Origin: Mytilus edulis
Lineage: Eukaryota
Length of the DNA stretch: 64,000 nt
Direction of reading: 5' to 3'
Assembly: GCF_963676685.1 (NCBI RefSeq)
Contig: NC_092344.1
Location: forward strand, 66,774,001 to 66,838,000
Shown here: piece by piece, positions 4,813 through 55,121 of the stretch
Position numbering within the stretch: the stretch's first letter is position 1
How the letters are laid out: every line of letters starts with the position of its first letter
Program-made: the position numbers and the translations under genes
Notes under the pieces: model-generated
What the model was told of the DNA's origin: nothing
Databases searched by the model: none
What the model saw: only the letters and a program-made list of their open reading frames with translations

Positions 4813-6480
4813 ATGGCGACATCCTCACAAAGTTGTGGAGTTTGTGACCTCCGTCACATCACAAAACCATCAATAGTCTGGTGTACAGAATGTGACGAGG
4901 GACTCTGCAAAGAATGCCAGGAACATCATGGTTTGTCTAAAGCATCGAGAAGACATAAAGTGATTCCTATTAATGAATACCAGAAATTACCATCTGATGT
5001 ACTGAAAATTACTCAGTATTGTAGCAAACACGATGAAAAGTTTCAAATTTATTGCAAGAAGCACGAATGTCCCTGCTGCAGCAAGTGCATAGTGGAAAGC
5101 CACACAGAATGCCGGGATATTGTAAATTTAGATGACGTCATTCATAATGTCAAAACCTCCAATGCCCTCTGCGAGATAGAGGAAACATTAGTTGAAGTTG
5201 CCGAAAATCTACAAAACATTCGTCAGCATATACAGGAAAACCGGTCGAATTTGAAAGAAAAGAGAATGGAAATAGAAAAAGAAATAAAGAAGACCCGAAT
5301 AATGATCAACAACCATCTCGACAAACTACAAGAAGATTCACTGAAACAACTCTTTGAGGTCGATAAAGGAAACTCGAAAATTTGTCAACTAGTTTCATCC
5401 TTAGAGATTAAGGAAAAAGAAATAGCAGAATGCCAGAGAAATATTTCGAACATCAAGCAACATGCGACGGACCTTCAGTTGTTTCTTTCAATGAAGCAGA
5501 TAGAAAAAGACGTAAATAACAAAGATAAATTCCTACACTCGCTGGTAGAAAACGAGGGTCAACTTTCTCTTTCATTTAAGATCAATGCCTCTATCAAAAA
5601 TATCATGTCCGATATAAAAAGTTTTGGAGAAGTGCATATTGAAGCGAAACCGTACGATATTGTTCTAATCGAGAAAAAGGCTCAACAAGCCCAAACGATG
5701 ATACAAACAAGATCCATTGAAAATTTGAAACTAACGTTACACGAGACAATTAACATTCAAGGAGAATGCATAAGCGGATGTTGCATGCTGCTTGATGGTA
5801 GAATGGCCTTTACCTTCTACTATAAAAAAACAGTAAAAGTATTTAGCGACAAAGGATTACAAGACTTCGAGGTGAAGTTGCGCGTTCACCCGTGTGATAT
5901 AGTATAAATAAGTGAGGACAATACATTAGCTGTTACAACTCGTACATCAGAGTGTATTACCATTATAGACGTGGAGAGGAAACAAATCAAGAAAACCATT
6001 TCACTTGATTCGTCCAGTTATGGCATAGCACTAAAAGATAATCGATTGATTTATTCCGGTGGAGACAAAGGTATACGAATGATCAATCTCAATGACGAGT
6101 CTACAAGTGACATTGTTCGGGACAAAATGCTAACTGGCTGTTCCATTGCAACTTTTAAGGACAAATTATATCACACAAATAGTGGAAAAAATACAGTTAC
6201 GTGTTATAATCTACAAGGTCAACTACAATGGAAATTTCAAAATGAAGGCGTTCTGCAGAAACCTCAGGGTATTGATGTAGACAATGATGGCAATGTGTAC
6301 GTAGTGGGGAGTGATTCACACAACGTTGTAGTTATCTCCCCTGATGGAACACGCCATAGAGAAATAATGACAGCAAGTGATGGTCTAAAATATCCTATGT
6401 CAGTTCATTATAGTGGTTTTAAGAATCAGTTGTTAGTCGCGAACTGGAGAAACAACGCTCATTTGTTTAGTTTTATCTGA
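4813..6480 (+). pseudogene. TRIM-like B-box/coiled-coil/NHL gene, copy 1, with a premature stop
   Basis: ORFs 4813-5907 and 5971-6480 are in the same frame. TAA at 5905-5907 replaces TAC (Tyr in DIVYIS of the other copies). Otherwise colinear with the 556-aa paralogues. A polypyrimidine-AG acceptor at 4795-4802 lies just before the ATG. Confidence 0.9.
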
Positions 6481-8350: not shown

Positions 8351-9722
8351 AAGTCCACTATAAATACAAATCTTCAAATGAGTCATTAGGAAGTCACAGA
8401 CGAGAATCTTGTTTAAACAGCTACATCTTATATTTTCAATCGAATATGAATTATGCTTTCTTATACTGTAGATTCGTAATTATTCGTCGGGTACCAATTT
8501 TCGTACTTTTTGTTGCTTCAGGGAAACACGAACTAAAATTTTCAAATATATATATATTTTTTCCATATATGCTGACTTAAGTAAAACAACGGAATCTTAT
8601 ATCCACGAGAATGCTAGATTTCCTGAAACCACAAAAATGGGAAGCAAGAAAATAAAAGAATCAACATTATTGATTTGGCCAATATGTTTGTTATGTTGTT
8701 TTTTGTAGTGCGGTATACTTTGGGGTGAGTTTCCCTTAATTATACCGAATTTAGTGTAATATATGACCCAGAACAACAGTGTATATTTGTATGCAGAGGA
8801 CAACTGCATCATTATATATTTTAAGAATCAACCTTCTAGAGACACAACAAATCCAATGAACCAGTTAATACGATATTCCAGGTCTTGAATGTCCGTTCTT
8901 ATTCTCTGTTAAAGGTCTGTTACTTACAAAGAATCTTTTTGACCAACTGTTCTCATTTGTAAAGTTCAAGTCATATTTTCCGAAAGTTTAAAGGAAACAA
9001 TGATCATGATACTGATTAATATTTGGTTTCCTTAATGGAAAATCTTTTGCACAATGAGCAAAGGTATTTATTCTATTTTTTATATCTTATAATTTTATGA
9101 AAGAGAAAATAAATTCATCCATATTACTATTTCACTGATACTCTTTTCTATAAATAACTCGAAATGAAAAAGGGAATTGTCTAGCCATTTTATATAACGT
9201 CAAGATTAGAATTTTGTAAATAAGCGATTATCGAATAACCGATCACCATGGCCAGGTGTGGATTTATTTGTATACACATAGATACGCACATACATGTACA
9301 TTGTACAATGGAATCTATGATTACATAACTATAAAACTATATTTATACTTTTTTTAGTACAAATGCTTTTTTGTAGACGACTTGACATCATTTGATAAAA
9401 CAGTAACACTGTCTTAAATTAGCTCAATATGTCAATGGAATGTTTTTATGAATACTGATTATAGTCTTTCACAGAACCCTGATCCGTAGTAAAAATGTTA
9501 AAAATAGTAACATCCCTATCTGTGTAGGTGGATTCTGAACTGTCCCGTCATTTATCAATTTCTTATTCAGTCGCGTGATATATAACCTTTCAGGTAAACA
9601 AGACTCAACATTTCAGCATAACAGGTACTTATTTTATTTGATATTTCAATGATTAATTCTTCTTTAATTACGATTTCCATTTTCCCTTATATAAGTATGA
9701 CCTAAATAAATTTGTTATTAAA

Positions 9723-13595: not shown

Positions 13596-16194
13596 ATGGC
13601 GACATCATCTCAAAGCTGTGGAGTTTGTGACGTCCGTCACATTAACAAACCATCCATAGTCTGGTGTACAAAATGTGACGAGGGACTCTGTACAGAATGC
13701 CAGAAACATCATGGTGTGTCTAAAGCATCGAGAAGGCATGAGGTGATACCTATCGTTGAATACCAGAAATTACCAACCGATGTCCGGAAAATTACTCAGT
13801 ATTGTAGCAAACACGATGACAGTTTTCAAACTTATTGTAAGAAGCATGAATGTCCCTGCTGCAGCAAGTGCATAGTGGAAAGTCATACAGAGTGCCGGGA
13901 TATCGTAAATTTAGATGACGTCATTGATAATGCCAAAACCTCCTATGCCTTGTCCGAAATAGAGGAGACATTAGTTGAAGTAGCAGATATCTACAAAAAG
14001 TTCGTCAGCATTTACAGGACAATCGGTCGAATTTGAAAGAAAAGAGAATGGAAATAGAAAAAGAAATAAAGAATACCAGAATAAAGATCAACAACCATCT
14101 CGACAAACTACAAGAAAATTTGATGAAACATCACTATGAGGTCGAAGAAAAAGAAAACTCGAAAATTTGTCAGTTAGTGTCATCCTTAGAGATCAAAGAA
14201 AAAGAAATAGCAGAATGCCAGAGAAATATTTCAAACATTAAGCAACATGCGACGGACCTTCAGTTGTTTCTTTCGATGAAGCAGATAGAAAAAGACGTAG
14301 ATAGCAAAGATAAATTCCTACACTCGCTGGTAGAAAACAAGGGGCAACTTTCTCTTTCATTTAAGATTAACGCCTCTATCAAAAATGTCATGCCCGATAT
14401 AGAAAGTTTTGGAGAAGTGCACATTGAAGCGAAACCGTACGATATTGTTCTAGTCGAGAAAAAGGCAAAACAAGCTCAAATGATGATACAATCAAGATCC
14501 ATTTATAATATAAAGTTTACGATACACAAGACCATTGACAACATAGTAAAATACATATACGGATGTTGCATGCTGTCGGATGGTAGAATGGCGTTTACTT
14601 TCTACTTTACAGTCTACAGACTGTCGGCATTCCAATGGGAACAAACTGTGCCCCTCTACTCGCCGACTTGTTTTTTATTATTATGAGGCTGACTTCATGC
14701 AGGAACTTCTTAGGAAGAAAGATAAGAAGTTAGCAATATCCTTTAACTCTACTTTCCGCTATATAGATGATGTTCTTTCACTAAACAATTCAAAATTTGG
14801 TGACTATGTGGAACGCATCTATCCAATCGAACTAGAGATAAAGGATACTGCAGATACAGTTAAGTCGGCTTCATATCTTGACTTACATCTAGAAATTGAC
14901 AATGAGGGTCGGTTGAAAACAAAACTTTACGACAAAAGAGATGATTTCAGCTTTCCAATTGTGAACTTTCCATTTCTAAGTAGCAACATTCCAGCAGCAC
15001 CTGCATACGGGGTATATATCTCCCAATTGATACGATATTCCCGTGCTTGCATTTCCTATCATGATTTTCTTGATAGAGGTTTGCTGCTCACAAGGAAGCT
15101 ATTAAACCAAGAGTTCCAAATGGTGAAGTTGAAATCATCCCTTCGTAAATTTTACGGACGCCATCACGAGTTGGTTGACCGTTATGGAATAACCGTTTCA
15201 CAAATGATATCGGATATGTTCCTTATGTCGTAACTACAATCCCCTTCCCTTTCATGAATATGACCTACCGAATTAGACTATTTACCGGATTTGTAATCAC
15301 TTAAGCAACACGACGGGTGCCACATGTGGAGCAGGATCTGCTTACCCTTCCGGAGCACCTGAGATCACCCCTAGTTTTTGGTGGGGTTCGTGTTGTTTAT
15401 TCTTTAGTTTTCTATGTTGTGTCGTGTGTACTATTGTTTTTCTGTTTGTCTTTTTTATTTTTAGCCATGGCGTTGTCAGTTTGTTTTAGATTTATGAGTT
15501 TGACTGTCCCTTTGGTATCTTTCGTCCCTCTTTTTTTAAACAGACAGTAAAAGTATTTAGCGACAAAGGATTACAAGAGTTCGAGGTGAAGTTGCCCGTT
15601 TTCCCATGTGATATAGTATACATAAGTAAGGACAATACATTAGCTGTTACAACTCGTACATCAGAGTGTATTACTATTATAGACGTGGAGAGGAAACAAA
15701 TCAAGAAAACAATTTCACTTGATTCTTACAGTTATGGCATAGCACTAAAAGATAATCGATTGATTTATTACGTTCGAAACAAAGGTATACGAATGATCAA
15801 TCTCAACGACGAATCTACAAGTGACATAGTTCGGGACAACATGCCAACTGACTGTCACATTGCAACTTTTAAGGACAAATTATATCACACAAGTAGTGGA
15901 ATATACACAGTTACGTGTTATAATCTACAAGGTCAACTACAATGGAAATTTCAAAATGAAGGCGTTCTGCAGAATCCTAAGGGTATTGATGTAGACAATG
16001 ATGGCAATGTGTACGTAGTGGGGAGTGATTCACACAACGTTTTAGTTATCTCCCCTGACGGAAAACGCCACAGAGAAGTGTTGACATTAAGTGATGGTCT
16101 AAAGGATCCCATGGCAATTCATTTTAGTGGTTTAAAGAATCAGTTGCTAGTCATGGACATGGATCACAAGGCTCATTTGTTTAGTTTTATCTGA
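13596..16194 (+). pseudogene. TRIM-like B-box/coiled-coil/NHL gene, copy 2, disrupted
   Basis: There is a 1-bp deletion near 13987 (GCAGATATCTAC versus GCAGAAAATCTAC) and a ~925-bp insertion within FTFYF|KQTV. The pieces correspond to ORFs 13596-14036, 14033-14609 and 15538-16194. Confidence 0.92.
14610..15534 (+). mobile_element. 5'-truncated Penelope-like retroelement (family A, Naiad-like): RT C-terminal half plus 3' UTR
   Basis: QTVGIPMGTNCAP, FRYIDDV, YLDL and YDKRDDF motifs of a PLE-type RT. The ORF stops after the thumb (15233) with no C-terminal GIY-YIG, consistent with the N-terminal-endonuclease Naiad clade. Possible TTTA duplication. Confidence 0.8.
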
Positions 16195-19625: not shown

Positions 19626-20438
19626 GGTGAAATATAAAAAAGAAAATGCGGTATGATTGCCAATGAGACAACTATCCACAAAAGACAAAAAAGACACAGA
19701 CAGTAACAACTATAGGTCATCGTACGGCCTTCAACAATGAGCAAAGGTATTTATTCTATTTTTTATATCTTATAATTTTATGAAAGAGAAAATAAATTCA
19801 TCCATATTACTATTTCACTGATACTCTTTTCTATAAATAACCCGAAATGAAAAAGGGAATTGTCTAGCCATTTTATATAACGTCAAGATTAGAATTTTGT
19901 AAATAAGCGATTATCAAATAAACCGATCACCATGGCCAGGTCTGGATTTATTTATATACACATAGATACGCACATACATGTACATTGTACAATGGAATCT
20001 ATGATTACATAAATATAAAAATATATTTATACTTTTTTTTAGTACAAATGTTTTTTTTGTAGACGACTTGACATCATTTGATAAAACAGTAACACTGTCT
20101 TTAGCTCCATATGTCAATGGAATGTTTTAATGAATACTGGTTATAGTCTTTCACAGAACCCTGATCCGTAGTAAAAATGTTAAAAATAGTAACATCCCTA
20201 TCTGTGTAGGTGGATTTTGAACTGTCCCGTCATTTATCAATTTCTTATTCAGTCGCGTGATATATAACCTTTCAGGTAAACAAGACTCAACATTTCAGCA
20301 TAACAGGTACTTATTTTATTTGATATTTCAATGATTAATTCTTCTTTAATTACGATTTCCATTTTCCCTAATATAAGTATGACCTAAATAAATTTGTTAT
20401 TAAAATCATCATAGATACCAGGATTAAATTTTGTATTT

Positions 20439-25505: not shown

Positions 25506-26522
25506 CAATAAATTATAAATCAACATCATTTAACTTTTAAATTACTAAAATCTGAACTCTTATTTTTTTTACTTAGTACTCGGTTGGTAAAATTTTTGCC
25601 CGAAAACCCAAAATCCTGTATGTTGACAGGTTGTCTTATGAGTCTTATTAAAAACTATGTTATTCAGGTATATATTTCAATTTTCCACTGTCGCTAAAAA
25701 AAAGTTAAAACGACCGATTTATATTAGTTTATTAAAGACAACAGTAGCTATAGTATACCGCTGTTCTAAAGTCATCAATCGAATCAGAGAACACAAATCC
25801 GGGTTATAAACTAAAACCGAGGGAAACACATCAAATAGAAAAGGAAAACATCGAAACAACAGAAACACTGACGTGCAACAAAAAACAAAAGACAATGCAA
25901 CATACATAGAAAGATAACAACTGCCATTTTCCTGCACAAGCTGCAACTAATATGACATATTTTTATTTCTGAAAATGAAATACTTGTGTTAATGAGATAA
26001 ATGAGATTAAAGGACGCCTCCGGGTGCGGGAATTGCGACAGTGGAAAATTGAAATATATACCTGAATAACATAGTTTTTAATAAGTTTAAATATCAAGCT
26101 TACTATCTTAAGGTTTTTAAAACGTACGACGAGCATTTGTTCGAAACACACAGTTGCTTACCGCAATACCAAAGAGCCAGTCATTTCCATCGACCATCTG
26201 ACATTGCGGTCATAAATATTTCGAGCACGATTATCGTAGTCGGACTCATAAGTCAACCTGTCAACATACAGGATTTGACATTATAGACATGTTGGTGACC
26301 TTCTGCTGTTGTTTTTTTCTATGGTCGGGTTGTTGTCTCTTTGGCACACTCCCCATTTCCATTCTCAATTTTATTCAATTTAGGAATATTAAATATTTAA
26401 AATGAAGTCATGGCTGATGTGATTGGTGGGATATTGTTGTCTTAAACATGTTTTAAACTTTATAAACAACTATTGTTATGACTTATCATTAATGATTGCT
26501 TTTTTTTGGTAGTTTATGTTAA

Positions 26523-28193
26523 ATGGCGACATCCTCTCAAAGTTGTGGAGTTTGTGACCTCCGTCACATCACAAAACCATCCATAGTCTGGTGTACAGAA
26601 TGTGACGAGGAGCTCTGTACAGAATGCCAGGAACATCATGGTCTGTCTAAAGCATCCAGGAGACATAAAGTGATTCCTATTATTGAATACCAGAAATTAC
26701 CACCCGATGTTCTTACAATTACTCATTATTGTAGCAAACACGATGAAAAGTTTCAAATTTATTGCAAGAAGCATGAATGTCCCTGCTGCAGCAAGTGCAT
26801 AGTGGAAAGCCATTCAGAATGTCACGATATTGTAAATTTAGATTACGTCATTCATAATGTCAAAACCTCCAATGCCTTGTGCGAGATAGAGGAAACATTA
26901 GTTGAAGTTGCAGAAAATCTACAAAAAGTTCGTCAGCATATACAAGACAATCGATCGAATTTGAAAGATAAGAGAATGGAAATAGAAAAAGAAATAAAGA
27001 AGACCCGAATAATGATCAACCACCATCTCGACAAACTACAAGAAGATTTTCTGAAACAACTCTTTGAGGTCGAAGAAAAAGATAACTCGAAAATTTGTCA
27101 ATTAGTTTCGTCCTTAGAGATAAAGGAAAAAGAAATAGCAGAATACCAGAGAAATGTTTCGAACATCAAGCAACATGCGACGGACCTTCAGTTGTTTCTT
27201 TCAATGAAGCAGATAGAAAAAGACGTAAATAGCAAAGATAAATTCCTACACTCGCTTGTAGCAAACGAGGAGCAACTATCTCTTTCATTTAAGATTAACG
27301 CCTCTATCAAAAATATCATGTCCGATATAAAAAGTTTTGGAGAAGTGCATATTGAAGCAAAACCGTACGATATTGTTCTAATCGAGAAAAAGGCACAACA
27401 AGCCCAAATGATGATACAATCAAGATCCATTGAAAATTTGAAACTAACTTTACACGAGACAATTAACATTCAAGGAGGATGCATATACGGATGTTGCATG
27501 CTGCTGGATGGTAGAATGGCATTTACCTTCCACATTGAACAGACAGTAAAGGTATTTAGCGACAAAGGATTACAAGACTTCGAGGTGAAGTTGCCCATTT
27601 TCCCGTTTGATATAGTATACATAAGTAAGGACAATACATTAGCTGTTACAACTCGTACATCAGAGTGTATTACTATTATAGACGTGGAGAGGAAACAAAT
27701 CAAGAAAACCATTTCACTTGATTCGTCCAGTTATGGCATAGCACTAAAAGATAATCGATTGATTTATTACGTTCGAAACAAAGGTATACGAATGATCAAT
27801 CTCAATGACGAGTCTACAAGTGACATAGTTCGGGACAACATGCCAACTGACTGTCACATTGCAACTTTTAAGGACAAATTATATCACACAAGTAGTGGAA
27901 TATACACAGTTACGTGTTATAATCTACAAGGTCAACTACAATGGAAATTTCAAAATGAAGGCGTTCTGCAGAAACCTCAGGGTATTGATGTAGACAATGA
28001 TGGCAATGTGTACGTAGTGGGGAGTGATTCACACAACGTTGTAGTTATCTCCCCTGATGGAACACGCCATAGAGAAATAATGACAGCAAGTGATGGTCTA
28101 AAATATCCTATGTCAGTTCATTATAGTGGTTTTAAGAATCAGTTGTTAGTCGCGAACTGGAGAAACAACGCTCATTTGTTTAGTTTTATCTGA
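26523..28193 (+). CDS. RING-less TRIM-like protein (B-box1, B-box2, coiled coil, six-bladed NHL-type beta-propeller), copy 3, 556 aa
   Basis: B-box1 CGVC..WCTEC..LCTECQEHH..H; B-box2 CSKH..YCKKH..CCSKC..H; heptad-rich central region; NHL-like repeats (PQGIDVDNDGNVYVV). Uninterrupted ORF. Confidence 0.93.
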   Translation: MATSSQSCGVCDLRHITKPSIVWCTECDEELCTECQEHHGLSKASRRHKVIPIIEYQKLPPDVLTITHYCSKHDEKFQIYCKKHECPCCSKCIVESHSECHDIVNLDYVIHNVKTSNALCEIEETLVEVAENLQKVRQHIQDNRSNLKDKRMEIEKEIKKTRIMINHHLDKLQEDFLKQLFEVEEKDNSKICQLVSSLEIKEKEIAEYQRNVSNIKQHATDLQLFLSMKQIEKDVNSKDKFLHSLVANEEQLSLSFKINASIKNIMSDIKSFGEVHIEAKPYDIVLIEKKAQQAQMMIQSRSIENLKLTLHETINIQGGCIYGCCMLLDGRMAFTFHIEQTVKVFSDKGLQDFEVKLPIFPFDIVYISKDNTLAVTTRTSECITIIDVERKQIKKTISLDSSSYGIALKDNRLIYYVRNKGIRMINLNDESTSDIVRDNMPTDCHIATFKDKLYHTSSGIYTVTCYNLQGQLQWKFQNEGVLQKPQGIDVDNDGNVYVVGSDSHNVVVISPDGTRHREIMTASDGLKYPMSVHYSGFKNQLLVANWRNNAHLFSFI

Positions 28194-30427: not shown

Positions 30428-31691
30428 GTTTCATTATATTATCAATCACAAGCTCCTTATTTAGTACCAATGATGCACAATATTACTACACAGTTAACAC
30501 TGGCTTTTCTTTTAATTGCTCTATTTAAGGCATTACAAAGTTTGCTCGATAAATGTAATCAATACAATAGTAATCTGAAATAAAATTGAGAATGAAAATG
30601 GGGAAAGTGTCAAAGAGACAAAAATTCGACCATAGAAGAACAGACAACAGCAGAAGGTCACCAACAGGTCTTCAATGCAGCGAAAAATTCCCGCACCCGG
30701 AGGCGTCCTTCATCTGGACCCTAAACAAATATATATGCTAGTTCAGTGATAATGAATGCCATACTAAACTCCAAATTGTACACAAGAAACTAAAATTAAA
30801 AATAATACAAGACTAACAAAGGCCAGAGGCTCCTGACTTGGAACAGGCGCAAAAATGCGGCGGGGTTAAACATGTTTATGTGAAATATAAAAAAGAAAAT
30901 GCGGTATGATTGCCAATGAGACAACTATCCACAAAAGACAAAAAAGACACAGACAGTAACAACTATAGGTCAACGTACGGCCTTCAACAATGAGCAAAGG
31001 TATTTATTCTATTTTTTATATCTTATAATTTTATGAAAGAGAAAATAAATTCATCCATATTACTATTTCACTGATACTCTTTTCTATAAATAACCCGAAA
31101 TGAAAAAGGGAATTGTCTAGCCATTTTATATAACGTCAAGATTAGAATTTTGTAAATAAGCGATTATCAAATAAACCGATCACCATGGCCAGGTCTGGAT
31201 TTATTTATATACACATAGATACGCACATACATGTACATTGTACAATGGAATCTATGATTACATAAATATAAAAATATATTTATACTTTTTTTTAGTACAA
31301 ATGTTTTTTTTGTAGACGACTTGACATCATTTGATAAAACAGTAACACTGTCTTTAGCTCCATATGTCAATGGAATGTTTTAATGAATACTGGTTATAGT
31401 CTTTCACAGAACCCTGATCCGTAGTAAAAATGTTAAAAATAGTAACATCCCTATCTGTGTAGGTGGATTTTGAACTGTCCCGTCATTTATCAATTTCTTA
31501 TTCAGTCGCGTGATATATAACCTTTCAGGTAAACAAGACTCAACATTTCAGCATAACAGGTACTTATTTTATTTGATATTTCAATGATTAATTCTTCTTT
31601 AATTACGATTTCCATTTTCCCTAATATAAGTATGACCTAAATAAATTTGTTATTAAAATCATCATAGATACCAGGATTAAATTTTGTATTT

Positions 31692-38106: not shown

Positions 38107-40222
38107 TATAACCGGGCGTTTTCCGTGTTATAGTGATTCAAAGACGGAATACCAATACTTTAAACTTTATTAGCAAGGTCCGGACAGTACCAGACCTAAG
38201 ACCTAAACTGACAACAAAATGACATACAAAAGCATATATAAAAAACAGTTACTATAGAAAAGGATTAGTGTCCAACGGATTAACTTGTCATGGTCAGAGT
38301 GATTTCCATCACGACAAACATATATTTAACAATAGAATTAATTAGACACAAAGAAATGTAAAAGGTTTGATAAACGGATTAATATATTGTCACTATAGCA
38401 CTTAAAATATATTGTCTAAATTTGATTTATATCTAATCGCAAATAGTCCAAATCTTCCTGGTTATATTCGCTACTACTCCACCTAAACTCGGTCTCCGAG
38501 TTTGCCGAATAAATTTTGTTATCGTCGTGGGTATCCTCCTCCTCGCAGATGACGTTGCTGAGAATTGCCACGCGAGCAAATTGCAAGGGTCGAACGCACA
38601 CCTCGGTTTGAATGTTTGATATCTAGATGTTGAAGTTCGTGTCTACTGTTTACGTTCTCTTCATTAAGTCAGAGTGATTTCCATCACGACAAACATATAT
38701 TTAACAATAGAATTAATTAGACACAAAGAAATGTAAAAGGTTTAATAAACGGATTAATATATTGTCACTATAGCACTTAAAATATATTGTCTAAATTTGA
38801 TTTATATCTAATCGCAAATAGTCCAAATCTTCCTGGTTATATTCGCCACTACTCCACCTAAACTCGGTCTCCGAGTTTGCCGAATAAATTTTGTTATCGT
38901 CGTGGGTATCCTCCTCCTCGCCGATGACGTTGCTGAGAATTGCCACGCGAGCAAATTGCAAGGGTCGAACGCACACCTCGGTTTGAATGTTTGATATCTA
39001 GATGTTGAAGTTCGTGTCTACTGTTTACGTTCTCTTCAATAAGTCCCTGCATTTCGTCTTCCATATCATTTAAGATGCGATTGTACTGCATGTCAGAATT
39101 TTTGAACTCCATTGTTCAGCGTTGTCTGGTGTTCGTTAAATTCAGGTTTTCCTCTTTCAGTTGAACTATTACTCTTTCCAAATGTTCAGTTCTACTTGTA
39201 TGTTCGGCTAACTCGTGTTCGATCTTTTGAATTATCCGGCCATGTTCTAAACGTTCCAAATTTACTTTGTCCAAATTCTTCCTTAATATCACGTTATCTT
39301 TCACTACGGTATCCAATTTAGAATGTTCAGACTTGAGCGCAGCGATTTCTTTGATGTAGTTTCGGTTAGTCACTTGCAACTTGTTTATGTGCTGTTTCGT
39401 GGATTCGTCCTGTATGGAGCACGTAAATGAAGCGATTTCCTGGTCCTCAAGTCCTTGAAACGGAAATTGAGACATTTGCTTCTTCTCAATAAACGTTCTC
39501 ATACGGTCACTGTCTCTCTGAATTTTGGATTTCGACTTTGATTTCTTCTTCGGTTTTTGGTTTTCACATGACTTCACGTGAAAACTACACATACGGGCAA
39601 AATGTCCATGATGTTTGCACTTGTAGCAATAAGCGTTGACAGCATAACATCGATGGTATGTGAAAACGTTCAATGTCTTACCGCAATATTTGCAAAGAAA
39701 GTCCAAACAGGTATCTTCTTTTGTTATCGGAAACGGATGTCCATTTCTGCAAGGCTGGTAATTCCAGGTTCCTTCCATATTGTTGCTTCTAAAGGTATCC
39801 ATTTACTAGTTTGGGGGAACTAGCTCAAGATCGTGCCCGGGTCCTCCCCCAATATATAACCGGGCGTTTTCCGTGTTATAGTGGTTCAAAGACGGAATAC
39901 CAATTATTTTATACTTTAAACTTTATTAGCAAGGTCCGGACAGTACCAGACCTAAGACCTAAACTGACAACAAAATGACATACAAAAGCATATATAAAAA
40001 ACAGTTACTATAGAAAAGGATTAGTGTCCAACGGATTAACTTGTCATGGTCAGAGTGATTTCCATCACGACAAACATATATTTAACAATAGAATTAATTA
40101 GACACAAAGAAATGTAAAAGGTTTGATAAACGGATTAATATATTGTCACTATAGCACTTAAAATATATTGTCTAAATTTGATTTATATCTAATCGCAAAT
40201 AGTCCAAATCTTCCTGGTTATC
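38107..40222 (-). mobile_element. Non-autonomous Gag-only LTR retrotransposon
   Basis: Direct repeats at 38107-38466 (360 bp) and 39855-40222 (368 bp) with TATAACC...GGTTATA termini. TSD AAAC; the empty site AATGAAACTTTGCATG is at ~24828. PBS-like TGGGGGAGGACCCGGG at 39836-39851. A purine-rich tract precedes the 3' LTR. Confidence 0.85.
38894..39802 (-). CDS. Gag-like zinc-knuckle plus coiled-coil ORF with one in-frame TGA (39116-39118)
   Basis: Double knuckle CKYCG...HRCYA...CYKCKHHGHFARMC (CX2CX4HX4C). ORFs 39116-39802 and 38894-39112 are in the same frame. Confidence 0.7.
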
Positions 40223-46300: not shown

Positions 46301-46979
46301 TTTTTATATCTTATAATTTTATGAAAGAGAAAATAAATTCATCCATATTACTATTTCACTGATACTCTTTTCTATAAATAACCCGAAATGAAAAAGGGAA
46401 TTGTCTAGCCATTTTATATAACGTCAAGATTAGAATTTTGTAAATAAGCGATTATCAAATAAACCGATCACCATGGCCAGGTGTGGATTTATTTATATAC
46501 ACATAGATACGCACATACATGTACATTGTACAATGGAATCTATGATTACATAAATATAAAAATATATTTATACTTTTTTTTAGTACAAATGTTTTTTTAG
46601 TAGACGACTTGACATCATTTGATAAAACAGTAACACTGTCTTTAGCTCCCTATGTCAATGGAATGTTTTTATGAATACTGGTTATAGTCTTTCACAGAAC
46701 CCTGATCCGTAGTAAAAATGTTAAAAATAGTAACATCCCTATCTGTGTAGGTGGATTTTGAACTGTCCCGTCATTTATCAGTTTCTTATTCAGTCGCGTG
46801 ATATATAACCTTTCAGGTAAACAAGACTCAACATTTCAGCATAACAGGTACTTATTTTATTTGATATTTCAATGATTAATTCTTCTTTAATTACGATTTC
46901 CATTTTCCCTAATATAAGTATGACCTAAATAAATTTGTTATTAAAATCATCATAGATACCAGGATTAAATTTTGTATTT

Positions 46980-49906: not shown

Positions 49907-52738
49907 TCATTCACTGTCATCATGTGTACTGCGTATTTCCAACGGATAGAGCTTCACAATCGGACGGTTGGTGATTCCTGTGTCGGTCTTGATAACAGCT
50001 GATCGAATGAGTCCATCCTTTCCACGAACTAAATCTTGTACAACTGCTAATTTCCACATTATACGATTTGTGTCATTGTGTACTTGTACAATGTCACCTA
50101 TTTGTATTGTTTGTTCGTTTCTTCCAGATGTACGGTGAAATTCACGGAGTGACGTCAGATATTCGTGTTTCCATCTTGAGCGAAAATGGTTGATTAGTTC
50201 ATTATTTCTCTGTAACTTTTTATTGAGTTTCACGTGCAAATCTTCGGAAGTAGCACTGTCAATATTCTGTTCCGATTGGTTGTCAAGTCGACGACCATAT
50301 AAAAGGTGCGCTGGCGTCAGCGGTTCGGGATCTTTAATATCAGTAGAAATGTGAGTTATCGGACGATTGTTTAGAGTTCCCTCGATTTCGATTACAATTG
50401 TATTCAACATTTCCGTAGTGACACATGACTTTCCTAGTATTGCTTTAATTGACTTTTTCGTGAGTCCAATTAGGCGTTCCCAAAAGCCTCCAAACCACGG
50501 TGCTCGGTTGGGTATGAATTTCCACTCCGTTCCTTGATCGGCAAGTTTTTCTTGTATTCGGTTGTCTTTGTTTGATCTTGTAATCTTTTCGGCGGCTGCC
50601 TTGAAGGTTGTTGCATTATCGGACAACATAATCCTTGGTGTAGATCTCCTAGCGACAAATCTTTTAAAAGCAAGCATGAAAGACTCCTCGGTTAAATCTG
50701 TGACTATCTCCAAGTGTATAGCTCGTGTAGCGGCGCAAGTAAATAAACAAATATATGTTTTGCTTAATTCGTTGTGTTTTCCTTTTGTATACAAAGCTCC
50801 TGTGAAATCAACGCCGGTTACTGAAAAAGGATAATCGTAGTTGACTCGATCTTTAGGTAGCGGTGGCGGATCGGGTGCGCTGTAAGGCATTCCTGATATT
50901 TTAATGCATTGGACGCATTTACGAATTTGTGATTTTACGCATTGCCTTATTCTCGGTATCCAATATTTCTGTTGAATATATGCGATTGTACTGTTAAGTC
51001 CGGCATGTAAAGTCTTTGTGTGTGCATCCATTACGATTAAGGACGTAAGACTGTGGTGTGTTGGCAATAACAACGGATATTTAGTACTCTCCTTCACAGG
51101 TGCGTTTTGTATTCTCCCGGTACAACGTAGTAATCCATTTTTGTCTGTATATAGTTTAAGTTGTCGAACAAGTGGCACTTTTTTCTGTGAAGATGAATTC
51201 AAGCTTTCAATTTCATCCTTAAAAGTTTCCTGTTGTACTGTCATTATTAGAACTTTTAATGCTTTACATCGCTCCTCAACACTGATAAATCCGATTGACC
51301 GTTTATCTTTTGAATTCCGTATATTCTGTATAAAACGCATGACGTATGCTGTTACTCTAATTGCTTTTTCTAAAGATCTGTATCGTTGTATATCTATACA
51401 TGAAATTGTCTGTGTTGAAGCATTTGTACTTTTATCGTCTGTTTTTTCATCGCTAACAGTTACCATCGTGCTGCATTCGTCAATTTTCCTCGTCCATGTC
51501 GGCCAATTCTCACGATTTAAAATCCATTGTGGACCGTTCATCCATAAGCTGTTGTTATAAAGTTGTTTAGCGTAAATTCCGCGAGTTAGGTAATCAGCTG
51601 GATTGTCATCTGTTGGACAATAATTCCATTCAGCATTCTCTGTTAATTTTCTTATTTCTTTAAGTCGATTTGCTACGAACGGTTTTAAGTTTTTTGACGA
51701 TTTAATCCAACTCAAAACAATTTGACTATCGCTCCACATATACACATGTTCTGCTGTTATGACTTTAAGAAGATGCGTTGCTAATCTGGCGCCGATAAGC
51801 GCGCCCATAAGTTCTAAACGTGGTAATGAAATCGGTTTTACGGGTACTACTCTATTTTTAGCCATGACGATGATCGATGAATTTGCTGTAACTAAGTAAG
51901 CACAAGCTCCGTATGCTAACTGACTGGCGTCTGTGAAAATATGTAGCGACGTTTTCTCGTTAATTACTCCTTCCGTTAACATTCGTGGAAATACTATTTT
52001 GGTAGCCTCCTCGATATCTAAAGCTATTACCTGCCATTTACTTCTCAGTTCGTCGGACAAACATTCATCCCAATCCAACTTTGCCTTCCATAAAGTTTGC
52101 ATAAACAGCTTAGCTTTCACCGTAATTGGCGTGATTAATCCAAGGGGGTCGAAAATTCTAGATGATGTGCGCAAAACCTCACGCTTTGTTGTCATTTTGT
52201 CCTTTTCCATAAATTCAATCTGTTGAAATTTCAAATCGTCGGATTCCCTATCCCATCTCATGCCTAAAATTTTGACTATGTCGTCATTGTCGCCGATCTT
52301 GTCTCGTCCTGCGATGTTCTGTAATTCCGTACTATTAGAATTCCAAGACCGTAAGTTGAATCCTGCCTCTGACAATAATTTTCTTGACTCCGTGTAAAAT
52401 TTCAAAAGTGATTGTTTATCTGTAAAACTGGTCAGAACGTTATCCACGTATACATTTCTCTGTAATTCTGTTGATGTAGTTGACGGATTGTCTCTAAAAT
52501 GTTTCATTAGCGTGGCGCTTAACATGAATGGCGAACAGGTGGCGCCGAAAAGTACAACTTTAAACCGGTAAGTAATCAAACGGCTTTCTGTGTCCATGGG
52601 ATTCTCTAACCAATAAAATCTTGTGACATCTCTGTCATCAACATCTAATTCAATATGCAAAAATGCTTTTTCAATGTCTGCTGTAACTGCATATTTGTAC
52701 ATTCTAAAGCGTACTAATATCTCCGTCAAATCAGTCAT
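49907..52738 (-). CDS. BEL/Pao polyprotein, C-terminal part: RT, RNase H, integrase (frame continues from ~52845)
   Basis: ADIEKAF, FGATCSPF and YVDN (RT); FTDAS and PRLEL (RNase H); H..H..C..C, DFTG, SDNA and GGFWERLI (integrase). Confidence 0.93.
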   Translation of the reverse strand: MTDLTEILVRFRMYKYAVTADIEKAFLHIELDVDDRDVTRFYWLENPMDTESRLITYRFKVVLFGATCSPFMLSATLMKHFRDNPSTTSTELQRNVYVDNVLTSFTDKQSLLKFYTESRKLLSEAGFNLRSWNSNSTELQNIAGRDKIGDNDDIVKILGMRWDRESDDLKFQQIEFMEKDKMTTKREVLRTSSRIFDPLGLITPITVKAKLFMQTLWKAKLDWDECLSDELRSKWQVIALDIEEATKIVFPRMLTEGVINEKTSLHIFTDASQLAYGACAYLVTANSSIIVMAKNRVVPVKPISLPRLELMGALIGARLATHLLKVITAEHVYMWSDSQIVLSWIKSSKNLKPFVANRLKEIRKLTENAEWNYCPTDDNPADYLTRGIYAKQLYNNSLWMNGPQWILNRENWPTWTRKIDECSTMVTVSDEKTDDKSTNASTQTISCIDIQRYRSLEKAIRVTAYVMRFIQNIRNSKDKRSIGFISVEERCKALKVLIMTVQQETFKDEIESLNSSSQKKVPLVRQLKLYTDKNGLLRCTGRIQNAPVKESTKYPLLLPTHHSLTSLIVMDAHTKTLHAGLNSTIAYIQQKYWIPRIRQCVKSQIRKCVQCIKISGMPYSAPDPPPLPKDRVNYDYPFSVTGVDFTGALYTKGKHNELSKTYICLFTCAATRAIHLEIVTDLTEESFMLAFKRFVARRSTPRIMLSDNATTFKAAAEKITRSNKDNRIQEKLADQGTEWKFIPNRAPWFGGFWERLIGLTKKSIKAILGKSCVTTEMLNTIVIEIEGTLNNRPITHISTDIKDPEPLTPAHLLYGRRLDNQSEQNIDSATSEDLHVKLNKKLQRNNELINHFRSRWKHEYLTSLREFHRTSGRNEQTIQIGDIVQVHNDTNRIMWKLAVVQDLVRGKDGLIRSAVIKTDTGITNRPIVKLYPLEIRSTHDDSE

Positions 52739-52805
52739 AATTGGTGGATATGTTGCTAGGCAATCGTTAAGACAAGGACTACTGTCGTTCGCTCTACAGC
52801 TACAG

Positions 52806-55121
52806 TTATATACTATGCGTATCGGGGTGGTGACTGATTCCTTTTTTTACGGGATGATGCGGAATGTAATGAACCTTGTTTGTGCATGTACTTTCATCAC
52901 ATACCTTTTCAATGAATCCTCTTTGTTCTTGGTCTGTAATTATCTCGCCATACTTTCGGAACATCTCGGGATCCTTCTTAAGGCGACGAATAACGCTTTC
53001 CGTTCTGCGTTTTGCGATGTCTTCATTTGTCGGTAGTTCTGGCGCATTCTCTCTCCATGGTAATTTCGTAATATACTTATCATTTTTCTTCGTAATAGAG
53101 GTTTGTAAGTAATTTTCAATTGATTCAGCTAGGTCTGGATCATTTTGTTCTTTAGTGTCAATTCCCAACGATTCAAGCTTCCAAAATTTTTCAAGATCGC
53201 ACTCTTCTTGTTTGTGACATACTAGTATATTCATCATTGAGAAAGATGCATTACTGGCTCGTGTAGGGACAGGACCGGAAAGTAAATATCCAATTCTCGA
53301 GCTAACTGCGGTTGGACCGTTTCCACGCACTATTTTGTCTTGAACTATGTCCCAGTAAAAATCACCTCCAATTAATAAGGATATTTCAAATTGCTCTCCA
53401 TCCATGACTGGGTGTGCTAATTGTAGACCACGTAAATAAGAAAACTTCTGCGTTATTCCTATGTTGTGAGTTTGAAGTGGTGAAGCAATGGTTGGTACAA
53501 TTAAAACTTCAATAGGGATTAATTCTCCTTCGGTAGACTTAAGATTAATTGTTGTTTTGTCAAGATTTCTCACCTTTTTTGTAGTACTTCCAAATGTAGC
53601 TATACTTAATGTTTCAGAACCTTCTTTTTTAATGTCCAATTTAGCTGCTAGTTCTTCTGTTATAAATGAGCGCTGAGCTCCCTCGTCAAAGAGTATTCTT
53701 GCATCTATACATGTATTCTTGTGAACGACTGGACTGAATGCGGTTTTCAGTAAAACAGTGGACCTTTCTTCGCTAGCGGTATACAACATAGAAGTTTCTG
53801 TGTCTACTTTACTTTGTGATTGTTCAGTTTCAATATGATGTTTATTTGAGTACGAGTTCTGTTTACATAATGAAGAGTGATGCTTCCGGTGGCAACACTT
53901 ACACGTATTCTTGGATTTGCAATCGGCTATTTTATGCTTACCTAAACAATTAAAGCATAACCTCTTTTCTTTTATAATGGCTACTCTTTTATCGTGATCT
54001 GTGACATCTTTACATTCGTTTGGCCAGTGGTTTCCGTCACAATATGCGCATTGTTTCTTCCGATTCGAGTTAAATGATTTATCTGTTGTGTTTATCGGAC
54101 AGGTTTTATCTGTAGTTACTCGTTTAACGCCTGTTATGAAATTTGCGCTAGGGGTTGCTGTTGAATACGTCTGTGTATAATCTCCGTATCCGGACTCTTG
54201 AATAGAAATCTCTTTACCTATCGCGATTCTAAGCGATTGAATATTCCAACTGTCGCTCCCGTTTTCTCGTGTTATATTTTTTCGTACTTCATGCGGTATC
54301 TTCCCGAGAATTACTGGTATCAATAACGATCCGTACATTTCCTGACATTGTCCGAGAGACTCTAGACCCCGTATGTAGGCTTCCGATTTGTCATGAAATG
54401 TTCTCAAACTTTCTAATGTATCATGTGGTGCGGGTATATCAAGTAGTGCTCTCATATATGCATTAATGATTTTATGTGGTTGCCCATAGCGGTTTCTCAA
54501 TAATTCAATTGCTTTGTGATAGTTTGGATTTGTCATGGTCAATCCTGAAATTACGTTTGCAGTTTCAAATTGAAGCAATGAGTTCAAGTACGAAAATTTC
54601 TGAATGTCAGTTAATGTGTGATTGTGATGAATCGTGGTCTCGTATGAATCCCAGAAATATTGCCATTGTAGAATGTCTCCATTAAAATTGGGAAGAGATA
54701 GCTTTGGTAGGCGATGGTTATTACTTGAGGTCGAACTTGACTGAGATAATTGCTGACTTGTGTGAGTAAATGGGTTTGTGTACGGAACAAACTCTGGTGC
54801 GCTTGAATCTAGTATCGAAGATGCTGCTTTTGGTACGGGTTTTAAGAACTTTTTAAATTTTCGAATTTTACCCTCTAAATCTAAATAATACTCATCTGTT
54901 TCAAGAATTTCATTTGTTATATCTTCTGATTCGACTGCATTTAATATCTGTTCGTCTATAGAGGCTAACGTCTTCTTTTTCTTCTCAATTGCTTCGAGCA
55001 ATGTTGATACTTCCTCCGTGTCTATTTCTGAATCTCCGATGGCTTCCTCCAGTTTTTTAAAAACTTTTGTTACTGCTGCTTTGTTCCCCGCTCTCAAGGA
55101 TTTTAGTCGGCTGATGTCCAT
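52806..55121 (-). CDS. BEL/Pao polyprotein, N-terminal part: Gag, three zinc knuckles, aspartic protease, start of RT
   Basis: LPKLSLPNFNGD; CAYCDGNHWPNEC, CFNCLGKHKIADC and CKCCHRKHHSSLC; LFDEGAQRSFI; HYIPHHPV. Confidence 0.92.
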   Translation of the reverse strand: MDISRLKSLRAGNKAAVTKVFKKLEEAIGDSEIDTEEVSTLLEAIEKKKKTLASIDEQILNAVESEDITNEILETDEYYLDLEGKIRKFKKFLKPVPKAASSILDSSAPEFVPYTNPFTHTSQQLSQSSSTSSNNHRLPKLSLPNFNGDILQWQYFWDSYETTIHHNHTLTDIQKFSYLNSLLQFETANVISGLTMTNPNYHKAIELLRNRYGQPHKIINAYMRALLDIPAPHDTLESLRTFHDKSEAYIRGLESLGQCQEMYGSLLIPVILGKIPHEVRKNITRENGSDSWNIQSLRIAIGKEISIQESGYGDYTQTYSTATPSANFITGVKRVTTDKTCPINTTDKSFNSNRKKQCAYCDGNHWPNECKDVTDHDKRVAIIKEKRLCFNCLGKHKIADCKSKNTCKCCHRKHHSSLCKQNSYSNKHHIETEQSQSKVDTETSMLYTASEERSTVLLKTAFSPVVHKNTCIDARILFDEGAQRSFITEELAAKLDIKKEGSETLSIATFGSTTKKVRNLDKTTINLKSTEGELIPIEVLIVPTIASPLQTHNIGITQKFSYLRGLQLAHPVMDGEQFEISLLIGGDFYWDIVQDKIVRGNGPTAVSSRIGYLLSGPVPTRASNASFSMMNILVCHKQEECDLEKFWKLESLGIDTKEQNDPDLAESIENYLQTSITKKNDKYITKLPWRENAPELPTNEDIAKRRTESVIRRLKKDPEMFRKYGEIITDQEQRGFIEKVCDESTCTNKVHYIPHHPVKKGISHHPDTHSI

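Follow-up and report, generated by a model that had tools for sequence, protein, structure and literature searches.

In TRIM5alpha and the finTRIMs of fish, the surface loops of the C-terminal recognition domain are under positive selection and recombination occurs among paralogues (PMC2657112). With the NHL domains of the TRIM-NHL proteins, the b-c and d-a loops define the top surface of the propeller and the a-b and c-d loops its bottom surface; in Brat, the top surface is the binding platform (PMC4015489). The present analysis concerns a 64,000-nucleotide stretch of Mytilus edulis DNA (G000:C1:66774001-66838000, hereafter the window) that joins features of both groups. The window is AT-rich animal DNA, with a GC content of 0.29-0.39 and no N, and its list of open reading frames (ORFs) together with a codon alignment revealed five homologous copies of one gene, all on the + strand, with copies 3-5 intact and copies 1 and 2 broken (Table 1). 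The genes encode RING-less proteins of B-box1, B-box2, coiled coil and six-bladed NHL propeller, the same architecture as that of Brat. The replacements that distinguish the copies are concentrated in the loops of one face of this propeller. We infer that the array is a diversified TRIM-type recognition family with the NHL propeller as its variable module; the pattern itself is statistically robust.

Pfam matches to PF00643 (zf-B_box; E=7e-9) in two stretches and to PF22586 (ANCHR-like B-box) at residues 8-50 identified the two B-boxes of copy 3, and their two sets of eight Cys/His ligands (C8, C11, C24, C27, C32, C35, H39 and H48 in B-box1; C70, H73, C81, H84, C88/89, C92, H97 and C100 in B-box2) are invariant across 23 paralogues. 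The ORF starts seven residues before the first of the B-box1 cysteines, a start that is kept in the 23 paralogues, and no RING of the TRIM/RBCC type was matched in Pfam at E<=0.1 with any of the three intact copies. In an AlphaFold2 model run with an alignment of the 23 paralogues, the B-boxes are followed by a predicted coiled coil in the form of a single helix (residues 106-237), and a profile search of the PDB matched residues 5-194 and 15-214 to the B-box-coiled-coil regions of TRIM28 and TRIM25. The linker that follows (residues 238-300) was modelled with low confidence and without an Ig-like fold, and a filamin domain was not matched in Pfam. The propeller was modelled as 24 strands in six blades with a predicted local distance difference test score (pLDDT) of 86-95. 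Its NHL repeat matched PF01436 at threshold, the profile search found the NHL domains of TRIM3 (7e-12) and TRIM2 (1e-10), and the best PDB folds returned by Foldseek, at target template modelling (TM) scores of 0.75-0.77, were likewise NHL domains, from TRIM2, TRIM3, Brat, Thin, Mei-P26, LIN-41 and NHL-2. By inspection, the protein has neither a signal peptide nor a hydrophobic N terminus and begins at B-box1, and hence it should be intracellular. Its neighbours in the Atlas were mostly from Mollusca, in clusters named 'B box-type domain-containing protein'.

To avoid circularity, the loop classes were set in advance from the DSSP strands of the model alone. The first strand (residues 308-315) was taken as strand d of blade 6, followed by strands a-b-c-d of blades 1-5 and a-b-c of blade 6. 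This register is supported by its agreement with TRIM2, TRIM3 and TRIM71, in which both termini lie in blade 6 with the C terminus at the bottom face (PMC9634614), and by the position of the NHL motif on strands a-c of blade 5; even a shift of the register by one strand would leave the variable loops together on a single face. The sequence-only reading from which this work started had described copies 3-5 as almost identical across the B-boxes and coiled coil and as differing, between positions 27440 and 28193, in short patches, about two per blade, on one face of a propeller. That interval is indeed the NHL propeller of copy 3, the nine patch strings that had been quoted all occur as written in the codon alignment, and the patches recur about every 20 residues and coincide with the d-a and b-c loops of the modelled propeller. 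Among copies 3-5, 31 of the 59 residues in these top loops vary, compared to 3 of 46 in the bottom loops and 21 of 144 in the strands; over the whole propeller, 55 of 249 residues vary, as against 12 of 307 in the N-terminal half. The variable residues thus lie on the face that is the ligand face in Brat (PMC4015489) and are not scattered over both faces and the core. By Fisher's exact test, top loops differed from bottom loops with p=2e-7 for copies 3-5 and p=1.4e-4 for the six intact copies of the complete array, and from strands and bottom loops combined with p=1e-9 and p=2e-7, respectively; the enrichment also holds with nine array copies. Even within the strands, the halves nearer to the top face vary more (21 of 66 residues) than the bottom halves (11 of 77; p=0.016). 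At the nucleotide level, runs of perfect identity in the strands and bottom loops are interrupted by clusters of replacements in the top loops. The variable positions are rich in Asn, Lys, Tyr, Gly, Asp and Ser, with charge and aromatic swaps between copies; loop b2-c2 is the only one to change in length (two additional codons in copy 5). The top loops of blades 5 and 6 are less variable and differ mainly between two old lineages, one of copy 5 and array member L006 and the other of the remaining copies.

Selection was assessed on the pre-set partitions by Nei-Gojobori comparison of pairs, by minimum counts of changes, and by IQ-TREE (GY+F3X4, each partition separately). Pooled Nei-Gojobori estimates of the ratio of nonsynonymous to synonymous rates (dN/dS, or omega) were 1.75 for the top loops, with values of 1.2-3.7 in all 15 pairs of intact copies, and 0.29, 0.23 and 0.25 for the strands, bottom loops and N-terminal half, respectively. 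Because recombination among the copies is heavy, tree-free lower bounds were also obtained for each codon, counting distinct amino acids minus one as nonsynonymous changes and distinct codons minus distinct amino acids as synonymous changes. This gave 65 nonsynonymous and 8 synonymous changes in the top loops (ratio 2.08; binomial p=0.026 against neutrality) as compared to 51 and 42 in the remaining propeller codons (Fisher p=1.3e-6 against the top loops). With the synonymous rate of the whole propeller as yardstick, 10 top-loop codons had four or more states (three or more replacements) where 2.55 were expected at omega=1 (p=3e-4), and the nonsynonymous rate of the top loops exceeded that synonymous rate (p=0.03). 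Of the 11 codons with at least four amino-acid states, 10 are in top loops, and the exception, residue 486, abuts one. Maximum-likelihood omega for the top loops was 1.90 with six copies (likelihood-ratio test against 1, p=0.068) and 2.09 with nine copies, a set that includes pseudogenes (p=0.0048). The corresponding values for the rest of the propeller (0.32 and 0.37) and for the N-terminal half (0.275 and 0.269) were significantly below 1. The top-loop dN of about 0.2 also lies above all of the neutral proxies, among them the 3' flanking sequence of copies 3 and 4 (0.008). A ratio of 1 or less at the loop codons, which would have spoken against the sequence-only reading, was therefore not observed by any of these methods, the excess over 1 being moderate.

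The copies do not share a single history. Sawyer-type run tests detected significant shared tracts in 12 pairs, all four gametes were present in half of the informative site pairs, and at least 34 recombination events are required (minimum number of recombination events, Rm>=34). Among the intact copies, dS was about 0.04 in the N-terminal part and three- to four-fold higher (0.12-0.17) in the propeller. Between copies 3 and 4, divergence increased from 0.8% in 1.5 kb of 3' flank to 2.0% in the N-terminal coding sequence and 6.4% in the propeller. The contrast is sharpest between the outermost members of the array, L006 and L002 (G000:C1:66686326 and 66895994), which differ at 4 of 921 N-terminal positions (0.4%) and at 0 of 147 of the 5' proximal positions, as against 12.9% of the propeller, indicating a recombination boundary near the linker between the coiled coil and the NHL domain. 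In its N-terminal half, copy 2 is more diverged than any other member of the array (dS about 0.28), and its codons 367-484 are almost identical to those of copy 3; the C-terminal half of the copy 5 propeller belongs to an older lineage common to L006. The loop alleles occur in different combinations among copies, from which it follows that recombination also makes new combinations of loops. The copies are mosaics in which the N-terminal half has been homogenized and the propeller retains old lineages, and we read this as concerted evolution of the scaffold with diversity kept or exchanged in the propeller. The phrase 'constant scaffold, variable surface' of the sequence-only reading is thus an accurate one, with the qualification that the constancy of the scaffold is due in part to gene conversion.

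The array runs beyond the window to about 11 loci over 210 kb, six of them intact and five broken or partial, and a scan of one 1.37-Gb assembly found at least 79 strong matches to the family genome-wide, mostly open single-exon ORFs clustered on several contigs or chromosomes. Within the window, the repeat units measure 8.8-19.2 kb, and their non-coding parts are up to 98-99% identical among copies 3, 4 and 5. Copy 1 carries an in-frame TAA at positions 5905-5907 (aligned to Tyr366 of copy 3) and a 3-bp in-frame deletion; copy 2 has lost 1 bp near codon 131 and gained an insertion of approximately 929 bp (about 14609-15535) that splits blade 1; copy 5, besides its longer b2-c2 loop, lacks four codons of the coiled coil. 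The stop codon of copy 1 and the two lesions of copy 2 were not mentioned in the sequence-only reading. The array accordingly displays the lineage-specific tandem expansion with turnover that characterizes the diversified immune-type TRIM families. Among 17 distant paralogues, the top loops were again the most variable class, at 1.56 bits compared to 0.84 for strands and 0.94 for bottom loops.

Transcription and splicing, with a short 5' exon that we take to be non-coding, are evident for at least one member of the array. A contig of a PacBio cDNA library (run X19) leaves the genome at the splice acceptor upstream of copy 3, with a loose end at 26511. The 30 nt of this loose end found no match within the window and map, with one mismatch, to G000:C1:66768150-66768179, in the same array 5.9 kb upstream of the window; the site is a block homologous to others, lies upstream of copy 1, and continues with AAG/GTAAAG. 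Conserved blocks with a CAG/GTAC donor occur 4.0, 6.2, 10.2 and 14.1 kb upstream of copies 2, 3, 4 and 5, and if these are first exons, the introns would be of 4-14 kb. Copy 3 may thus use the putative exon listed for it in Table 1. The propeller and the 3' end are likewise represented in RNA-seq contigs, with paralogue-like differences, and the sequencing runs in which the gene occurs come from samples labelled gill, mollusc and invertebrate. The Logan contigs over this multi-copy gene are fragmented (90-800 nt), break at the variable loops, and are no measure of copy 3 expression or of its presence in other individuals; public runs contained 0.53-0.65 of the copy 3 31-mers, a fraction that does not bear on presence or absence either.

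Table 1. Features of the window, numbered from its first nucleotide; states are amino-acid states in the six intact copies of the array.
Feature	Position	Strand	Remarks and basis
Copy 1, B-box1/B-box2/coiled-coil/NHL	4813..6480	+	Broken; ORF list, codon alignment
Copy 2, pseudogene	13596..16194	+	Codon alignment
Copy 3, intact, 556 amino acids, coding sequence in one exon	26523..28193	+	Pfam, AlphaFold2, Foldseek, PDB profiles
Copy 4, intact, 556 amino acids	41718..43388	+	ORF list
Copy 5, intact, 554 amino acids	60936..62600	+	ORF list
Copy 3 NHL propeller, residues 308-556	27444..28190		Preceded by B-box1 (about 8-48), B-box2 (70-100), long helix (106-237) and low-confidence linker (238-300)
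Copy 3 top loop d6-a1, residues 316-320	27468..27482	+	Hypervariable; residue 320 with 4 states
Copy 3 top loop b1-c1, residues 337-340	27531..27542	+	All four positions vary; residue 338 with 4 states
Copy 3 top loop d1-a2, residues 357-360	27591..27602	+	Residue 360 with 4 states
Copy 3 top loop b2-c2, residues 378-381	27654..27665	+	Residues 378 and 379 with 4 states each
Copy 3 top loop d2-a3, residues 399-402	27717..27728	+	Residue 402 with 4 states
Copy 3 top loop b3-c3, residues 418-420	27774..27782	+	Forms, with the end of strand b3, the YVRN/SAGD/SGGD patch
Copy 3 top loop d3-a4, residues 437-445	27831..27857	+	Longest and most variable; residue 442 with 6 states, 439 and 443 with 4 each
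Copy 3 top loop b4-c4, residues 458-461	27894..27905	+	Residue 458 with 4 states
Copy 3 blades 5-6	27954..28166	+	Top loops d4-a5 (478-484), b5-c5 (501-504), d5-a6 (521-528), b6-c6 (546-548)
Polypyrimidine tract and TAG splice acceptor	26500..26512	+	10 nt upstream of copy 3 ATG; sequence
Putative promoter and non-coding first exon of copy 3	20076..20306	+	Conserved CAG/GTAC donor, exon end at 20306; alignment, pattern search
End of homologous first-exon block, copy 2	9624	+	
End of homologous first-exon block, copy 4	31559	+	
End of homologous first-exon block, copy 5	46847	+	
Identical 20-mer ending in the CAG/GTAC donor, once per unit	9611..9630, 20293..20312, 31546..31565, 46834..46853	+	In a conserved block with a TATATAA-like element: putative promoters and first exons of copies 2-5
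ORF overlapping the copy 2 insertion	14580..15233		YIDD-type motif; no Pfam match at E<=0.001
228-amino-acid ORF in the spacer of copies 3 and 4	39116..39802	-	Cys/His knuckle-like motifs, then a coiled-coil-like tail; no Pfam match at E<=0.001
BEL/Pao-type long terminal repeat retroelement between copies 4 and 5	49907..55121	-	Two long ORFs of 943 and 771 amino acids; Pfam matches include Peptidase_A17, RVT_1, an integrase zinc-binding domain, DUF1759 and DUF1758

The longer spacing of the copy 4-5 repeat unit is largely due to the BEL/Pao element, and the insertion in copy 2 appears to be a retroelement fragment. Two further defective members lie at G000:C1:66856344 onward (L008) and G000:C1:66865695-66866624; in one of this pair the frame is shifted within blade 3 by a 5-bp insertion, and the other is an N-terminal fragment covering only residues 3-317 at 82% identity.

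We propose, with a probability of roughly 60%, that this is a young array evolving by birth and death, in which the scaffold is homogenized, the top loops are under positive diversifying selection, and the proteins serve to recognize intracellular targets that change rapidly. Gene conversion and unequal crossing-over would keep the B-boxes and coiled coil, as an oligomerization scaffold, and the propeller framework nearly identical, and would at the same time reshuffle propeller segments among copies. Positive diversifying selection would drive replacements in the d-a and b-c loops of the top face, most strongly on blades 1-4. The outcome would be a set of germline-encoded proteins that share a constant body and present many different binding surfaces, directed at targets such as viral proteins or RNAs, or those of other parasites or of transposable elements, in parallel to TRIM5alpha and the finTRIMs with an NHL propeller replacing the B30.2 domain. 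Without a RING, the proteins may act on the target by binding or sequestering it, or else bring in effectors, RING-bearing relatives among them, by way of the coiled coil and B-boxes. The architecture, the mapping of variation to one face, the dN/dS above 1 in the loops, the recombination and the transcription of the array are what the analysis shows; the class of ligand, a role in immunity and the mode of effector action are what we infer from them, and by analogy with the TRIM systems the immune-receptor reading is a reasonable hypothesis. Lattice-type recognition, which the sequence-only reading brought in from TRIM5, would be a hypothesis of the same kind. A wider claim can be put forward only tentatively, namely that molluscs hold a large germline repertoire of cytosolic NHL-propeller recognition proteins, with a positively selected ligand face, loop cassettes and propeller modules recombined by gene conversion and a uniform B-box/coiled-coil module, and that these are previously undescribed invertebrate restriction or pattern-recognition receptors against viruses or transposons.

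Several observations weigh against the proposal of diversifying selection for recognition. The excess of omega over 1 in the top loops is of moderate significance (p=0.03-0.07 for the six intact copies and 0.005 for nine), and the maximum-likelihood test of it assumes one tree despite the heavy recombination. The faces were assigned from the strand topology of a model and not from measured solvent exposure. The evidence of transcription applies to the array and not to copy 3 in particular. With five of its 11 members defective, part of the array is decaying. In older arrays on another chromosome (two clusters, contig C7), top-loop omega was 0.67-0.74 by maximum likelihood and 0.4-0.95 in ten pairs, roughly twice the values for the rest of the propeller (0.34-0.40), and such sub-neutral values could be explained by relaxed constraint alone; the family-wide pattern is compatible with weak constraint on the loops, and the signal of positive selection was obtained in this young array only. 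These older arrays, the defective members, the pervasive gene conversion and the marginal p=0.068 with six copies all favour an alternative without adaptive diversification, in which the loops merely lack constraint and gene conversion removes the differences in other regions of an array that is partly in decay. We consider this unlikely for the array at hand. Relaxation does not account for a top-loop omega of about 2 that is above 1 in all 15 pairs, for 10 codons with at least four states where neutrality predicts 2.55, or for a top-loop nonsynonymous rate above the synonymous rate of the whole propeller (p=0.03); nor would conversion be expected to skip loops of four codons and yet homogenize strands of 15, unless converted loops were selected against. 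A mutational mechanism as the main driver, with short-tract templated conversion from paralogues or another locally targeted process installing multi-nucleotide cassettes into the loops, would explain why changes are clustered (2-8 substitutions within 4-9 codons, with perfect identity on both sides), why identical loop alleles recur in varied combinations with four gametes in half of the site pairs and Rm>=34, and why propeller dS is three to four times that of the N-terminal half. Imported tracts should, however, bring synonymous changes in proportion, which is not seen in the 65:8 ratio of the top loops, and many neighbouring loop alleles are single nucleotide steps apart; no donor cassettes outside the genes turned up, though no search was made for them. 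As the main cause, such a mechanism is very improbable. That the copies are an assembly artefact, being collapsed or duplicated haplotypes of one or two genes, is scarcely credible: mollusc genomes are highly heterozygous and no public run contains more than 65% of the copy 3 31-mers, but the five copies lie on one contig in units of 8.8-19.2 kb with different insertions (the BEL/Pao element between copies 4 and 5, the retroelement fragment in copy 2), and eleven loci extend over 210 kb.

The function of the variable face is a separate question. Residue counts give 5-9 Lys plus Arg and 7-10 Asp plus Glu in the top loops of each copy, which are thus about net neutral as far as a count, as distinct from an electrostatic surface, can indicate. 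In this they are unlike the basic RNA-binding faces of Brat and TRIM71, a further point against the proposal, and closer to the surface of TRIM2 and TRIM3, which is described as mixed (PMC9634614); the ligand may be a protein with a likelihood no lower than that of RNA. The characterized TRIM-NHL proteins considered here are RNA-binding or other cellular regulators that use the top face (PMC4015489, PMC9634614), the domain architecture of the array proteins is identical to that of Brat, and their immune role is assigned by analogy. It could accordingly be argued that the copies are endogenous regulators, each paralogue binding a different cellular RNA or protein (e.g., in gametogenesis, development or proteostasis) as Brat and LIN-41 do, and that the changes in the loops reflect subfunctionalization or a conflict in which pathogens play no part, for instance in reproductive or self/non-self recognition. 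This we regard as improbable, given that hundreds of lineage-specific tandem copies with fast turnover are atypical of developmental regulators, and that the top loops are not basic. Flies have three TRIM-NHL genes, worms four and mammals five (PMC4015489).

Bivalves lack adaptive immunity yet withstand dense exposure to microbes and viruses, and expanded gene families, usually reported as copy numbers, are often cited as the reason for this resistance. The array offers a molecular signature, with the ligand-binding face of a known fold specifically diversified on a scaffold known from vertebrate restriction factors. If the recognition of intracellular targets is its role, the TRIM5/finTRIM principle extends to another recognition domain and another phylum, loop swaps should alter binding specificity, and the content of copies and alleles should be associated with resistance. 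The homogenized N-terminal module beside the diversified propeller would, moreover, be a clean case of selection opposing concerted evolution within one exon. A bivalve B-box zinc-finger orthogroup has been reported with an average of 8.9 genes per bivalve as against 0.1 in other species, among the bivalve-specific immune-type expansions (PMC8382680), the B-box is among the most abundant domains of a mytilid transcriptome (PMC5549309), and candidates for resistance to herpesvirus in oysters include TRIM-annotated genes (PMC9437489). These reports of B-box/TRIM-like expansion concern copy number only, whereas the present array combines hypervariable loops with dN/dS above 1. Full-text searches of the literature returned no description of one-face NHL-loop hypervariability, or of dN/dS above 1, in mollusc TRIM-like genes, a result that does not in itself prove novelty.

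In fold, the closest relatives of the array proteins are Brat and the class VII TRIM-NHL proteins (TRIM2, TRIM3, TRIM32, TRIM71/LIN-41, Mei-P26 and NHL-2), as found both by Foldseek and by profile search. Brat, itself without a RING, has the same order of B-box1, B-box2, coiled coil and NHL domain, and the face that varies in the array corresponds to that by which Brat binds RNA or partners. Identity to the class VII propellers is, however, only 12-17%, and these proteins are encoded by three to five conserved single-copy genes, in contrast to the hundreds of young paralogues of the array family. A filamin domain is present in TRIM2, TRIM3 and TRIM71 and absent from TRIM32 and Brat, the array proteins resembling the latter. 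Fungal NLR-like proteins with hypervariable WD40, ANK and TPR repeats (PMC4986451), which are intracellular proteins of non-self recognition, are alike in having a variable propeller or repeat domain with diversifying selection and recombination or concerted evolution. They differ in the propeller family (WD40), in the scaffold (NACHT/NB-ARC), in the kingdom, and in that their variation lies also between the repeats within a gene. The best analogy would appear to be with TRIM5alpha and the finTRIM/bloodthirsty-type TRIMs, which share with the array the B-box and coiled-coil scaffold and the lineage-specific tandem expansion, and whose focus of dN/dS above 1 on the loops of the C-terminal domain is seen here as well, at moderate significance and in this array only. 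They differ in that their recognition module is the B30.2 (PRY-SPRY) domain and not a six-bladed NHL propeller, and in that the array proteins, having no RING, have no intrinsic E3 ligase. An antiviral function has been demonstrated for TRIM5alpha, whereas the genes of the array are known from sequence and model.

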